Assembly: GCF_016433145.1 (NCBI RefSeq)
Contig: NC_058133.1
Span: forward strand, 251,359,442 to 251,423,441
Reading direction: 5' to 3'
Source: Gracilinanus agilis
Lineage: Eukaryota
DNA length: 64,000 bases
The notes under the pieces are model-generated. The model was not told where the DNA came from. It made no database searches and worked only from the letters and a program-made list of their open reading frames with translations. Made by a program: the position numbers and the translations under genes. Below are positions 44,401 to 50,400 of this stretch, one piece after another; the first letter of the stretch is position 1, and each line of letters begins with the position of its first letter.

Positions 44401-47400
44401 CCTAAACTCCCTCTATGACCCCTGATGATAAGATTAAGAGGGGAGACATATATCATCTTTCTATATAAACAATTTATCTTATATTGATTCATGTTTACCT
44501 TTTCGTATTTAATTTTAGGAATACTTAGAAGTCCTCTATTTCATTAAAGCTCCATTTTTTCCCCTTGTATCATTGTATTCATTTTGTTGACTAAGTTATT
44601 CTTGGTTGTAAGTCTTGTCTTTTACCTTCTGGAATATTGTATTCCAAGTTCCCCCTCCTTTATATAGTGGTGGTGGTTACTAAATCATCTATAATCTTGA
44701 CTTGGGCTCTCCATTACATGAATTGTTTCTTTCTGGCCATTTGCAGTATTTTTTCTTTGACCTGGAAGCTCTGTATTTGTGCTCCGATTTTCTTAGGAGA
44801 TTTTGCTTTGAGGTTTCCTTTGGGAAGTAACTAGTGGATTCTTTCTGTTTCTACTTTACCTTCTGCTTCTAAAAATTTGGGCAATTTTCTCTTAAGATTT
44901 CTTGAACTAGATGAATTCGGAGTACAGATTGCAAGTGTTTTTCACTTTATTTTTCTTGCTTTTTTTCAACATGAATAGAAGTATGTTTTGCATGACTTCA
45001 CATGTATAATGGGTATCATATTGCTTACCTTCTTGGTGGCTAGGGGAGGGGTTGGCTAGGAGAGGAAGAATTTGAAACTCAAAATAAAGATTTCTTGAAT
45101 CATGATTGCTATACTCTTATTGTAGTTATGGCTTTCTGGTAGTCCATGATTCTAGAATTTTTTTCTCCTCCATCTGTTTTCCAGTCAGTTGTGTGTTTTT
45201 TTGTATTTTAGATCATATTCTGACCAACAGTGTTAATACAGAACAGTGAATCCTATTTTATGAAAAGCAGAGTTACATAGAATAAAATGAGCAATTCACG
45301 TCTCAAAAAACAATCATATCATGGGGGGAAGGCCATTTTCTTCCTCACTGACCATTCCAAATATAGACAGTTTTTAACATGCTATTTCAGTGTTTATCAT
45401 GACAAAAGACAGTGTTACCAAAAAAGAAAAAAATCCACGGATGTACGTGGTAGATTATATAGAATCAAATTATATTTTAAGACTTCATTCTCTTAAGACT
45501 TCTTTCTCTTCAGCATGGCACCAATAAACTGTTCAAAAGAAACTGGAATCAAGAGATGTTCGTCAGTGCACAAATCCAATTCTCTAGGGAGCCCTTCACA
45601 TGAACTGCAAAAGTAGGGTTCTAATTTGTGTTATCTATAATTGTTGGCCTTGCCCCCCTTTTTTCTTGATATCATCAATAAACACCATAATGAACATATC
45701 TTCTTCAGCTGATTTCATCATTTCAATGTTTTGGAATACAAAGTCCATTATACTAGTGTAACAATAATACATCTGTATTGTCTTCTGACACACAACACAG
45801 CACCACTGTGTAGATGCACAAAAGGAAAAACAAAATCAAGCATGAAAAGAAATTGACAGGAAAGGAAGAAGTGGTATAAAGGCAACATGCAACCAAATCC
45901 TTGCTAGTGGAATGTGTCATTCCCACAATTAGATCATTCAATTAAAGCGATGTTTTCCAAAGTAATTAAAAAATTTCAAAACACTGCTAGGCATTATCAT
46001 GTGAAACAAATAAATGACAATTACATTGTGAGTGTTAATGACAGTAAAAGCATGTGTGTCAGAAGTTATAATGTTCCAAGTAAATAATTAAGACTTTTAT
46101 ACTTTAAGTTTGTTAAGAAATAGAACATATGACCAGATTCAAAACCTGGTTTAGTAGCAATTTAGCTGCCATTAGGTTACAAATCAATCTATGTAGCCAT
46201 TCAAAATTGTTCTATATGGTCTGTGCAATGCTAAGATTGTTGAGGTTCAAAGTCTTAGTTGCCAGTGCACACATAGTCCCCACATATAATTCAACACCTC
46301 TTACTGTAAAGCACAGCATAAAGTCCAGCTCATTATGTGTTAGGCATCACTGGAACACCTGAAGGCTTGCTGCTTTTTTCCTAATAAGAAAGGTATGAAA
46401 TATGATATCCATTTCTTATTTCATCATAATTGCAATCAGATTTTGTATTAAATAATAGCAAGCCCAAATATCACTATTTTATTCACTTTGAAAGTTCTTA
46501 AGTACTTCAAAAGCTTTCTGGTCCTGCAAAACCTACAACCATCATAAAGTCTCACAGACATTTGAAATTACATGTTCATTCTAAATGTAAACTAAATTTT
46601 TGTGGAAATTTTCTTTCAAACCCAAAGTTTGATACATTTGACTCATCCTAGAGCTATTCAGAATAAAGTAAATATATATATATATATATATGTAACAGAT
46701 GTTATTTTCAAAATTGGGGAATAAAGATTATTTTTCCCCTTCTCCATATATACATTTATATATATACACACGTGCATGTATGTATACACACACACACACA
46801 CACACACATATAGATAAACTTTTCCATATGTAGTTTTTAAAACAAACAGCTGAAAATGAAACATTTCTTTTGGATGATAAAGTGGTCTCAATGGAGCCAA
46901 GAAAGGTATTTCTCATTTAAACAGCCAACATACTTTTCCATCTTTCATGCATAGATGCAATTCCTCTATTTTTTTAATAGTTGAATTTGAACAGTACAGT
47001 GAATTGCACTATTTATTCTAGCTTGCTATTATGAATTATTAAAACACATGTCCTTTGGTATCGATATAACTTAACAGTATAAATGCTATTGTACTGGGAT
47101 AAACTATTCTCAGAAAATCTAGAAAAAATCATTTTGAAAAATTTTGCAACACTAATAGAAAACAAATTCAATGTGTAAACATATGAATTCTTTAAAATCT
47201 GTTAGCAATTGCCATCTATGCACACAAAAGGCAAAATGCAGAGGCTGTAGTTATATGCAGACTTTTAAGAATACTTTTTAAATATTTTAATTATTTATTT
47301 AAATTTAAATATTCTATTCTTAGAATGAATTGTATCATGTTAAAAACTTACTATGAAGTTACTTATAAAATAGGGGTTTTTTCTCATATTATTTGTAGTG

Positions 47401-50400
47401 TTTGGTATACATGCTCATAGGCAATTTAACAATATACAGCAGATTCCAGTAAGAGTTCTGCTGAATGACCTGCCATCACTGAAAGGCAAATACTGAAGAA
47501 AACTTTTGGAACATCAGTTAAATTAGTTAATGCTACAGTTCAATAAATAAGAAACTGCCTGAAATATAAGTATTCTTAAAAAAAAAAAAAGTTTTCCAAA
47601 TTTCCAAATATTGACAAACATGTAAGGCCTATGTAATTGCAAGAGTAGACAGCTGTATGCTTCCAACTTTCATAGAAACAAGTGTTACAAAACAAAATTT
47701 TAATCTTAAATAGTATGAAATCATTAATTTATTTTGCTTTATCAGTTAAAATTCCTCTAGATGGGACCTTTAATATGTTGCAGGCTTATTTCATGAGCCA
47801 ATAGGCATTAACAGTTTCCTGCTTATTTCAACTCCTTAGTGCATAACTTTCCATTTAAAATGGTTCAACAGTAGGAGTGAAATATGATACATAGGCATCG
47901 CTCTCTATGAGAAAAAAAACACAAAACAGTTCAGTTAGGAGTACTTTTAATCCTATGTACAAACACTGAAACACTCATGCCCTTTCAGTATTTACTTGGT
48001 TACATCTGTCAACATGTGGCAGTCTTCTAGCCCAAAACAAAAACCAACAAATTTGGAAAGCCCAAGTCATAAATCAAGAATGTCATAACCAAACCAACAT
48101 TAAGACTTTGGTACCCTTTCAGTCCTCATTTAAAACCATGATCTCACTTTTCTGCCTTTTATTCATTGGGCTGTTTGGCCTTGCTGCTTGTTTCCCCAAT
48201 TCCATGAATTCCTCGGCTATGTACCATTGGATAAGGAAATGCAGCACTGCCACAACTATAACCTAGATTTGCAAGTCGTGATAGAGCTTTAATGCTACCT
48301 GGAGGTCTCCCTGGGCTGACTTTGTATCCTGCAGCTTTAGTTGTACCCAGAGGTCTGCCTGGACTTGTCTTAAATCCAGCTGCTTTGGTGGTTCCAAGGG
48401 GTCGTCCTGTGCTCGTTCGGTATCCTGCTGATTTGGTGGTCCCCGAGGGCCTGCCACGTTTACCAGATCGACTGAGGTTTTTCTTTTTCTTGAGTTCATC
48501 TTTTGTCTCTATGCTTCTGCCACTTGTAGCCTGTAAATGTGTTTCATTTAGCGGGTCTTGCCTCTGGCAAGCGATTGGTTTGTGGCTGACTGTGTGGCTG
48601 TATTTGCTTTGTTGAGAGGAATATAAGTCAAATTGATCAGCAGCTCTCATATTGTCTTCATTGAGGCAGGAAGCCTTGCCAGGCCCACAGAAAGCAGTAT
48701 TACCGCTGGCAACAGGATGCATCATTTTCACGGCAACTTGTCTCCCAGCCCCTCAGACCTTCCAGGTGCCTCCCATGCGGCTGGTGGGACGCGAGACAGA
48801 GAAAGACCCCCTTTTCACACGGCCTGTGACACTCCCCGCCTTTCCCCCCAGGAGGAGGCAATCACCCCGCAGGTGGCGACCAAGCCTCGATGACGAGCCC
48901 AGCCCAGGATCCTCGAGAACAGTCGGACCTGTTTTGTTTTTTGCTATGATTTACCATCCTGAGTAATGATATAGGATATATTATATTGGGTTCTAGAACC
49001 AGAAAAGTAGAAACCCTGATTTCGTTAGTAAGGAGCTCTCCCTAAGAGGTAAGATATTATCCTTGACACTGGAGAAAGCTAAAAGGGATGTATGGTCTCT
49101 AGGCATTCCTAGTCTAACATGAGAGATACAGAATAATCATGTGAAACCATAAATAGCACATTATAGCATAGACATAAAAATGATGCCTATACAGTAAATA
49201 CAAATGATAAAATATAAACAATTCAAGACAAAAATGTTGAATGAATAATATAACTAATAACAGCTGGGTGAAACTATCAGTTTAAAGGGACAGTCAGTAT
49301 CCAGGATATTTAAAGGTATTGGGCTAGATCAAGGGAGGTATTATTTCAAGAACACTTATTTTTTAGAGAGGGCAGGGACAGATGGAAATTCCATAAGAAA
49401 ACACATAGAATTAGAAATCTAAAGTTGTTTCAGAAGCCATCTAGTCCAACTTCATTTACAGATGAGGAAAATGAGACTCAGAGAGGCAAACTGGTTTCCT
49501 AATAACTGAGAGGTAGAATCAGCAGTAGGAGTTGAATCCAATTTTTTTGACTTTGGAACCACTGCTTTTTCTAATATCTACTCCATGACCCTACTTCCCA
49601 GCATTTCCTATCCTATCAGTTGCGGAAAGTTCTTCCTCATGTCTCATCTGTTGCTTGCTTAGCCTTATAGAGCCTTTCTCAATCCACAAGCAAAAAGAAG
49701 TAAAGACAAAGAAAACTGGCTCCTGCTGAGAACAGAAACCCAGTCCAGACTGAGCTTTCTAAAAATATATGGAGCTCTTCCTTCAGGGATTTGAGATGTG
49801 GGACCAATTTGGCATTCCCCCTTTCTCAAATGAGAAAATGTCTTAGATGGGAATACTTATAATTCCCTCAGTGCATAAAGCCATCCAACTAGAGTCTGCA
49901 CAAAAAGTGTCCTATTCCACGCAGAACACACCAAATTCTCTAGGAGACCCTCTAGCATAAGCAATCTCTATAAAGGTCCCAGGCAGTTTTCCTTTCTTAT
50001 CCCATAGGGTACCTGAAATTCCACTCATGGGTGCTAGCTATTGCCAGGGCAAATTAAACAGAATTGCAAACTGACCCATCTGGACAAGAAAACAAGAAGA
50101 ACTTAAAGAAGTAGCAAAGAATATTAGCTACTTAGGATTTTAGGCACAGACATTCTCACTAAGAAATTGTAGATCCCAAAGAGATAATAAGGAAAAAGAT
50201 TTGTACAAAAATATTTATAGCCATGTTCTTTGTGGTAACAAAAAATTGGAAAATGAGGGGGTGCCCATTGATTGAGGAATGATTGAATAAATTGTGGTAT
50301 TTGTGCTGAAAGGAATAATGAACTGGAAGAATTCCATATGAACCGGAAAGACCTCCAAGAATTAATACAGAGCGAAAGGAGCAGTCAGGAGAACACTGTA

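Follow-up and report, generated by a model that had tools for sequence, protein, structure and literature searches.

A processed copy of C5orf24, lying antisense in intron 1 of MINK1 and most likely kept by selection, is on balance the best overall explanation of a locus that we analysed in a window of 64,000 nucleotides (64 kb, with zero N and zero gaps) from Gracilinanus agilis. An earlier note on this DNA had described a near full-length C5orf24 retrocopy at this position, and our analysis bears this out: a 188-codon ORF, its leader and a colinear 3′ region lie together between MINK1 exons 1 and 2 (Table 1). Given the features described below, we consider it very probable that the locus is a retrocopy. 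That it is also a maintained retrogene, with transcription starting from the CpG-rich leader that came with it, is a proposal to which we give about even chances.

Table 1. Features of the 64-kb window at the C5orf24 copy in MINK1 (positions count from the first nucleotide of the window)
Feature	Position	Strand	Details
C17orf114, two exons	1275..1917	-	locus marker; upstream side of MINK1
PLD2 exons (upstream neighbour, so read)	8914..12890	+	two HKD active-site motifs; Pfam PLDc E 1.7e-6 and 0.0073; ORF translations
Host intron, MINK1 intron 1	26112..54780	+	28.7 kb; between exon 1 CDS 26055-26111 (then GT) and exon 2 54781-54846
Whole putative retrocopy body (leader, CDS, about 3 kb of 3′ region)	45188..48928	-	3′ limit approximate
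A-rich tract	about 45188-45209	-	16 A in 22 nt
Conserved 3′ block, as in turtle gene models (alternative tails P0024, P0026)	45390..45529	-	tblastn 73%/15 aa (E 0.002), 70%/10 aa
3′ block conserved with budgerigar gene model (tail of P0034)	45781..45828	-	tblastn 75%/16 aa, E 0.005
Conserved alternative 3′ exon	46343..46381	-	13-residue tail of 155-aa isoform, then stop; tblastn 13/13 identity to eutherian and bird tail
(TG)n-type microsatellite	46746..46816	.	within 3′ region; ORF translations CVCVCV
C5orf24 ORF	48159..48725	-	188 codons and stop; ATG at 48725; Pfam DUF5568 E 3.9e-88
Four tandem 16-residue GRP (AT-hook-like) repeats	48267..48473	-	residues 85-153
Internal alternative 5′ splice site CCAG/GTAGCA	48297..48299	-	after codon 142/143
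CpG-rich leader	48726..48928	-	203 nt, 12 CpGs, GC 0.64, o/e 0.61

MINK1 was assigned as the host gene from synteny; a later kinase exon of this gene matches the MAP4K4, MINK1 and TNIK chains (E about 1e-25). The host is read from the plus strand and the C5orf24 ORF from the minus strand, so that the ORF is antisense within the intron and downstream of PLD2. C17orf114 exon 2 in the window is 100% identical to the G. agilis and Monodelphis proteins, and exon 1 encodes Q17, which is shared with G. agilis XP_044529099.1 and is H17 in Monodelphis.

The listed ORF begins at a GTG (48159..48731 on the minus strand, 190 aa) with an in-frame TGA nine codons ahead of it; read from the ATG, it encodes 188 aa with no internal stop or frameshift, in keeping with the intact ORF claimed earlier. 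Residues 1-188 align to profile positions 1-185 of PF17724 (DUF5568) with 294.5 bits (Pfam gathering cut-off 32.4), and the window protein is thus a member of the C5orf24/DUF5568 family. This family is also called UPF0461, with human C5orf24 at 5q31 and B230219D22Rik in mouse. Compared with the C5orf24 of turtle, otter and echidna, the window protein shows 90%, 88% and 86% identity, and it is the same as database protein P0001, an entry with two contigs only that is also recorded on the 760.8-Mb contig of Monodelphis, whose 188-aa product is therefore identical. Just two residues out of 143 differ between the C5orf24 of opossums and that of dasyurids. One position is informative for the origin of the copy: residue 85 is S in didelphids only, the window copy included, and N in dasyurids and all other vertebrates compared. 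The earlier suggestion of a marsupial-specific retrogene can accordingly be narrowed to one that is didelphid-specific or younger.

Four 16-aa GRP repeats, the first with KRGRP, were present as previously described, with motifs starting at residues 91, 107, 123 and 139 at a spacing of exactly 16, and this block is almost invariant across 32 vertebrate sequences. Repeat 1 resembles an AT-hook of the HMGA type in its R-G-R-P core and basic flanks, whereas repeats 2-4 have the form T/P-G-R-P-L/P-G without flanking arginines. A Pfam search of the block at E values up to 10, in which the HMMER filters drop weak short matches, returned DUF5568 only and no AT_hook match. AlphaFold2, run with 32 sequences, predicted full disorder for the C5orf24 protein (mean pLDDT 50.8) and no fold, and predicted disorder is a further likeness to AT-hook proteins. 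From these features we infer that C5orf24 may be a small nuclear protein that binds DNA or chromatin. C5orf24 is counted among uncharacterised proteins, with nuclear partners from high-throughput data only (PMC10298883). A literature search that combined C5orf24 with retrocopies or retrogenes, opossum or AT-hook found nothing relevant.

Directly upstream of the coding sequence, GC and CpG content step abruptly at 48928; the CpG-rich sequence ends 203 nt upstream of the ATG, without a promoter-sized island further out. The earlier counts of 12 CpGs in a leader of about 200 nt and 11 in the coding sequence (o/e 0.35 in the latter) were reproduced, as was their contrast with a CpG-poor background: CpG o/e was 0.07-0.10 in the flanks and the remaining intron, 0.07 in the 1.3 kb upstream of the leader and 0.13 for the whole window. 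We read the leader as the parental 5′ UTR (exon 1) fused straight onto the start of exon 2, and as a candidate promoter brought along from the parent. N-terminally extended C5orf24 isoforms in other tetrapods have K directly before MM in 31 of 31 cases, with varying residues further upstream, which puts a conserved intron some 3 nt ahead of the start codon. At this position the window sequence is CCGTG/AAAATG (slash, place of the intron), with no AG acceptor; the parental 5′ intron is thus probably absent from the copy, as judged from protein models of other species and not from the opossum parent. The fused 5′ UTR postulated in the earlier note is in this way backed indirectly. Near 48786, some 60 nt ahead of the ATG, a good polypyrimidine tract is followed by CAG, a possible acceptor.

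On the other side of the ORF, colinearity of the copy with the C5orf24 3′ regions in gene models from birds and turtles extends to 45390. The internal splice site in the window lies at the exact residue, 142/143, where G. agilis P0201, Monodelphis P0020 and the 155-aa isoforms of numerous species part from the 188-aa form, and the optional intron that starts here (48298 to about 46382) is present in the copy. The first 142 aa of Monodelphis isoform X1 (P0020) are identical to the window protein; its 76-aa tail is absent from the window, which contains only diverged, repeat-derived look-alikes on the wrong strand, a difference accounted for by another species and another locus. The absent tail and the Q17 of C17orf114 together reject Monodelphis as the source of the window. 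A word search for parental transcript-derived ORFs gave no match for a spurious 69-aa ORF of the 3′ region (45287-45493). Self-comparison of 44078-50174, a method that detects only repeats with a second copy in the window, showed no interspersed repeats besides the (TG)n tract, consistent with the earlier observation of about 3 kb without SINE insertions; the nearest recognisable repeat-like sequence past the A-rich tract begins near 45135.

Two classical hallmarks of retroposition, a clean poly(A) tail and a target-site duplication, were weak or absent, which counts against the retrocopy reading. The 3′ limit of 45196 given in the earlier note holds as an approximation, the copy running into an A-rich tract that is possibly a decayed poly(A) tail or else the natural end of the mRNA, with AATACA as a weak signal. 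The interval 45100-45450 contained no clean run of poly(A). In searches for a target-site duplication, the longest exact word common to the two flanks was 8 nt, which 139 of 300 shuffles also reached; 62 of 300 reached the best local-alignment score. The 7-nt motif AAAACAG adjoins the 5′ end of the copy and reappears 3′ of the A-rich tract, a recurrence not above chance.

RefSeq lists two C5orf24 genes in G. agilis, on different contigs. The 155-aa product P0201 is recorded on two contigs (the longest of 725,203,407 nt) as XP_044520629.1, which has no isoform label, and as XP_044529102.1 ('isoform X2'). The latter accession is three numbers away from the C17orf114-like XP_044529099.1, which is placed on the 523,219,341-nt contig; from this adjacency of accession numbers we take XP_044529102.1 to be the window locus, which would already have an automatic RefSeq gene model. 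Over 155 aa, the window protein is 100% identical to the product of the other G. agilis gene. Monodelphis C5orf24 (P0020, XP_056667080.1) lies on a 760,810,273-nt contig and C17orf114 of that species on another chromosome, the 544,688,058-nt contig. Relocation of the only copy, which had been raised as a possibility, is rejected by the second G. agilis gene on another contig and by the position of the Monodelphis gene off the C17orf114 chromosome. The window copy is, as these placements are read, an addition, its parent still present on another chromosome and presumably containing introns. The parent sought by the earlier note was thereby recovered as a second gene, its intron-containing structure being seen only via the isoforms of other tetrapods. 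On the MINK1 chromosome of Monodelphis, as located by C17orf114, no C5orf24 protein was seen, which fits a copy that arose in the Gracilinanus lineage and is possibly young.

The sequence can be accommodated by a simple course of events. A full-length mRNA of the 188-aa form, with its 5′ UTR intron already spliced out and its long 3′ region complete, internal optional intron and alternative terminal exon included, would have been reverse-transcribed and then inserted antisense into MINK1 intron 1. The copy carries about 200 nt of parental CpG-rich 5′ UTR, the entire ORF, the internal splice donor and the alternative exon, and selection would keep it as a working retrogene driven by the CpG-rich leader. 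Two RefSeq isoforms are modelled at the locus. Small contig sets of sequencing runs from the study that also supplied the best DNA run (share 0.96) contained 36-47% of the exact 31-mers of the locus, and these shares of 0.36-0.47 suggest transcripts near-identical to the locus. Isoform models of this kind may be built on protein homology or on multi-mapped reads of the parent, and together with the 31-mer shares they are suggestive only of transcription of the copy.

The strongest competing account, which we regard as possible though doubtful, is a young neutral processed copy that entered the Gracilinanus lineage no more than a few million years ago, too recently to have been damaged, with RefSeq models produced through homology or multi-mapped parental reads. 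Its protein identity, over 155 aa with the other G. agilis gene and over 188 aa with the Monodelphis product, its undecayed leader CpGs and the absence of a detectable repeat insertion in 3.7 kb would equally be expected of a recent dead-on-arrival copy, and the confinement of P0001 to two contigs means that no identical annotated protein lies on the Monodelphis MINK1 chromosome. The maintained retrogene is favoured over this account because the scars of insertion are eroded, yet there are zero residue changes and the leader CpGs have not decayed. By our estimate, non-synonymous sites make up about 430 of the 564 in the coding sequence, so that zero changes would be expected only with neutral divergence below about 0.7%. 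A copy that young should keep a clean A-tail and a target-site duplication; instead of a long pure tail and a perfect duplication, we found a tract of 22 nt, six of them not A, and no duplication above chance, which argues for selection. In addition, a near-identical and fully covered parent should give a 31-mer share close to that of the best DNA run and not the lower shares seen, a weak argument given that coverage is uncertain.

It is improbable that the locus is not a retrocopy at all, having arisen instead by DNA-level duplication or transposition of the gene body, or being the ancestral didelphid location with a 5′ exon elsewhere in the intron. The optional internal intron is indeed present, neither a target-site duplication nor clean poly(A) was found, and the polypyrimidine tract and CAG near 48786 could be the acceptor for an upstream exon. 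However, the 188-aa form requires the internal intron to be unspliced, so a retrocopy of such an mRNA must contain it, and no acceptor is left at the conserved position some 3 nt ahead of the ATG. The abrupt stop of CpG-rich sequence and the lack of a promoter-sized island beyond it, the position of this vertebrate-wide gene on another Monodelphis chromosome and the second gene in G. agilis also speak against this origin. An assembly artefact that wrongly put cDNA-like sequence, or a paralogue that had been collapsed or mis-joined, into the MINK1 intron is scarcely credible: the sole near-complete holder of the 31-mers (the run with share 0.96) may be the source sample of the assembly and so not independent support, but the window has no N or gaps, both flanks are unique, ordinary intron sequence without any sign of a join, and a RefSeq gene is annotated beside C17orf114-like.

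With the C5orf24 family, the putative maintained retrogene shares its 188 aa, four GRP repeats, internal alternative donor after GRPP and 13-residue alternative tail exon, and it differs from the usual gene in lying in a MINK1 intron on another chromosome without the intron just upstream of the ATG. Like lineage-specific retrogenes with a CpG-island 5′ UTR, it sits intron-less at a new locus and has an intact ORF, an mRNA-borne CpG-rich 5′ end and a persisting parent; unlike them, it keeps an optional intron and an alternative exon and could in principle yield both parental isoforms. Mcts2 in H13 and Nap1l5 in Herc3 are eutherian imprinted intronic retrogenes. The window copy, known here from sequence alone, resembles them as a retrocopy nested in a host intron with a CpG-rich 5′ end; set beside them, its CpG-rich block is just 203 nt and the copy runs antisense to the host gene. 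We consider it very unlikely that the copy is a didelphid-specific retrogene under selection for millions of years with a differentially methylated promoter, imprinted or modulating MINK1 in antisense, and imprinting and effects on MINK1 are pure speculation.

If the locus is only a young copy, it would represent ordinary retrocopy biology, of use mainly as a phylogenetic marker in didelphids and as a caution when C5orf24 and MINK1 are quantified by RNA-seq in opossums. Were the imprinted or antisense reading true, it would be an independent marsupial counterpart of Mcts2/H13 and Nap1l5/Herc3. If the copy is maintained, it would be a second source, under independent regulation, of a deeply conserved, uncharacterised disordered nuclear protein, and a further case in which a retrocopy's own CpG-rich 5′ UTR may suffice as a promoter. 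Because the optional intron and the alternative exon were carried along, both parental isoforms would be within its predicted coding capacity.

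The window carries a near full-length, intact C5orf24 retrocopy in antisense orientation within intron 1 of opossum MINK1, and we found no papers describing this copy. Its ORF is uninterrupted in the ORF listing, and the reading frame stays open two codons further 5', to a GTG at 48731. Compared with Pfam, the full length of the ORF matched DUF5568 (E 3.9e-88, 294.5 bits), which is the C5orf24/UPF0461 family, and C5orf24 from turtle, otter, and echidna is 90%, 88%, and 86% identical to it, respectively. The GRP motif occurs four times at a spacing of exactly 16 residues (residues 91, 107, 123, and 139), the first within KRGRP, in agreement with the earlier note, which had described an uninterrupted 188-residue ORF with four such repeats. 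This repeat block shows nearly no variation across vertebrates. Pfam reported no AT_hook match within it, and AlphaFold2 with 32 sequences yielded no fold for the C5orf24 protein (mean pLDDT 50.8, no secondary structure). In the literature searched, C5orf24 still counts as uncharacterized, with high-throughput nuclear partners only (PMC10298883). The protein may bind DNA or chromatin through its AT-hook-like repeats.

Coordinates of features in and around the C5orf24 copy (window positions)
Feature	Position	Strand	Remark
C17orf114	1275-1917		
GCK-IV kinase exon 1	26055-26111	+	within large CpG island
Kinase intron 1	26112-54780		contains the copy
(TG)n tract	46746-46816		
C5orf24 ORF	48159-48725	-	188 codons + stop
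Internal donor	48297-48299	-	CCAG/GT, after codon 142/143
CpG-rich leader	48726-48928	-	203 nt upstream of ATG
Inverted repeat, first arm	50175-50745		
Inverted repeat, second arm	51847-52462		
GCK-IV kinase exon 2	54781-54846	+	

The ORF lies on the minus strand between two plus-strand kinase exons, 5.9 kb from exon 2, so that the nesting antisense in MINK1 intron 1 claimed previously is borne out. A later kinase exon matched the MAP4K4, MINK1, and TNIK chains equally well, and the name MINK1 therefore rests on synteny. Phospholipase D HKD-motif exons are located upstream of the kinase gene on the same strand. The spliced genes MINK1, PLD2, and C17orf114 were compared exon by exon. Exon 2 of C17orf114 in the window is identical in G. 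agilis and Monodelphis, and exon 1 carries Q17, as does G. agilis XP_044529099.1, where Monodelphis has H17; the window thus most likely comes from G. agilis. In P0207, a transcript-derived Logan protein of 88 residues compared with 1275-1436, the second C17orf114 exon is joined to a different 34-residue N-terminus, which suggests that this microprotein gene has an alternative first exon in an opossum.

We read the gene structure of the C5orf24 family from annotated isoforms of other species. In frogs, reptiles, birds, monotremes, and eutherians, isoforms with an N-terminal extension have K directly before the MM start in 31 of 31 cases, residues further upstream vary, and several species have two or three alternative N-terminal heads. 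Variable heads with a constant K indicate that alternative first exons share a single splice acceptor ~3 nt upstream of the ATG. At this conserved intron position (slash) the window reads CCGTG/AAAATGATG, without an AG, and thus the leader of the copy continues without a break across the site of an intron in other species. CpG-rich sequence stops abruptly 203 nt upstream of the ATG, as expected if it came with the mRNA, and in the downstream direction the copy runs colinearly with 3' regions from gene models of other species. The copy retains the internal donor, its 13-residue alternative tail exon (46343-46381) is identical to that of eutherians and birds at 13 of 13 residues, 45781-45828 matches a budgerigar tail, and 45390-45529 matches turtle tails. 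The 188-residue form does not splice at the internal donor; any copy of its mRNA must therefore include the optional intron, whose presence is thus no argument against an RNA origin. Two classical hallmarks of retroposition are missing or eroded: the 3' end has a 22-nt tract with 16 A and no longer A-tail, and a target-site duplication sought around the copy gave nothing above chance. Taken together, the copy is very probably processed, that is, mRNA-derived; the fused leader, abrupt CpG edge, and colinear 3' region uphold the earlier reading of a near full-length retrocopy.

In the C5orf24 family the donor after GRPP joins to the 13-residue tail exon, an exon kept from frogs to mammals (database proteins P0023, P0024, P0026, P0034, P0036, and P0048), with several lineage-specific acceptors further down the C5orf24 3' region, and the whole arrangement is intact in the copy (45390-46410, minus strand). 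This CDS-internal alternative splice is ancient in the family.

The leader contains 12 CpGs (GC 0.64, observed/expected ratio 0.61) and the CDS 11 (ratio 0.35), set in flanks and remaining intron with ratios of 0.07-0.10; these statistics, computed without 46336-46387, reproduce all of the earlier counts and the CpG-depleted surroundings. CpG density in the leader is on par with that of bona fide CpG islands of the window (0.54-0.78), against a genomic background otherwise stripped of CpGs. At 48760-48790 (minus strand), within the leader and ~60 nt upstream of the ATG, a stretch rich in pyrimidines leads up to a CAG; it would be a credible 3' splice site if an upstream exon has been gained by the copy. 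In-window self-comparison, which locally took in 43500-50800, detected no interspersed repeat in 44078-50174 and only the (TG)n tract, in keeping with the ~3 kb of UTR-like sequence free of SINE insertions noted before. Just downstream of the copy, 44930-45135 (minus strand) resembles what we take to be a widespread repeat of opossum genomes; no second copy of it occurs in the window, and it was therefore left unflagged. Between the copy and exon 2, the arms of a 0.6-kb inverted repeat, 83% identical, probably represent a transposable element present in two copies.

S85 is common to the copy and both opossum genes, whereas N occupies this position in dasyurids and in every other vertebrate of the comparison; thus, unless gene conversion intervened, the copy arose after the didelphid/australidelphian split. 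Its protein equals the Monodelphis 188-residue product and, over 155 residues, the product of the other G. agilis gene. With ~430 non-synonymous sites, we estimate that zero change is likely only at a neutral divergence below ~0.7%. A copy this young would be expected to retain an A-tail free of other bases and an exact target-site duplication; the window's copy has neither, which weighs against a very recent insertion whose tail happened to be short and whose duplication was slight or absent. Such an insertion would fit the record of P0001, the database protein equal to the ORF: this record covers only two contigs, and the MINK1 chromosome of Monodelphis therefore has no identical protein on record. 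We regard recent insertion as possible but doubtful. An older copy, kept by selection and with a leader that would be unmethylated and hence probably active, is about as likely as not. Exact 31-mers of the locus were present at 36-47% in three small runs from the same study and at a uniform 26-27% in ten runs with two other organism labels, shares that weakly favor the older, selected copy, as they resemble those of transcripts differing from the window by a few percent rather than matching it exactly; low coverage would explain them equally well.

The 155-residue G. agilis isoform P0201 is found on two contigs, of which the longest is 725,203,407, and is listed under two differently named accessions. 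XP_044520629.1 lacks an isoform label; XP_044529102.1 is labeled 'isoform X2' and is three numbers from the C17orf114-like XP_044529099.1 (523,219,341 contig), an adjacency by which we take it to be the automatic RefSeq model of the window's copy. In Monodelphis, C5orf24 is on the 760,810,273 contig and C17orf114 on the 544,688,058 contig, placing the usual opossum C5orf24 on another chromosome than the copy. Vertebrate C5orf24 presumably lies between DDX46 and TXNDC15, as in human and chicken, and opossum chromosome 1 presumably holds the counterparts of human 5q31 genes. Monodelphis isoform X1 (P0020, XP_056667080.1) is identical to the ORF over residues 1-142 and continues with a 76-residue tail encoded nowhere in the window. 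Residues 190-217 have diverged look-alikes at 43859-43942, 35318-35365, and 11934-11978 (all plus strand); the last ~30 residues seem to stem from an interspersed repeat that is common in opossums, and this isoform is probably an exonized repeat rather than a conserved product. Relocation of the only copy, a side option of the earlier note, is rejected, as the usual opossum C5orf24 is on another chromosome and the second G. agilis gene is on another contig. G. agilis has two C5orf24 genes, and the copy in the MINK1 intron is an addition to a parent on another chromosome.
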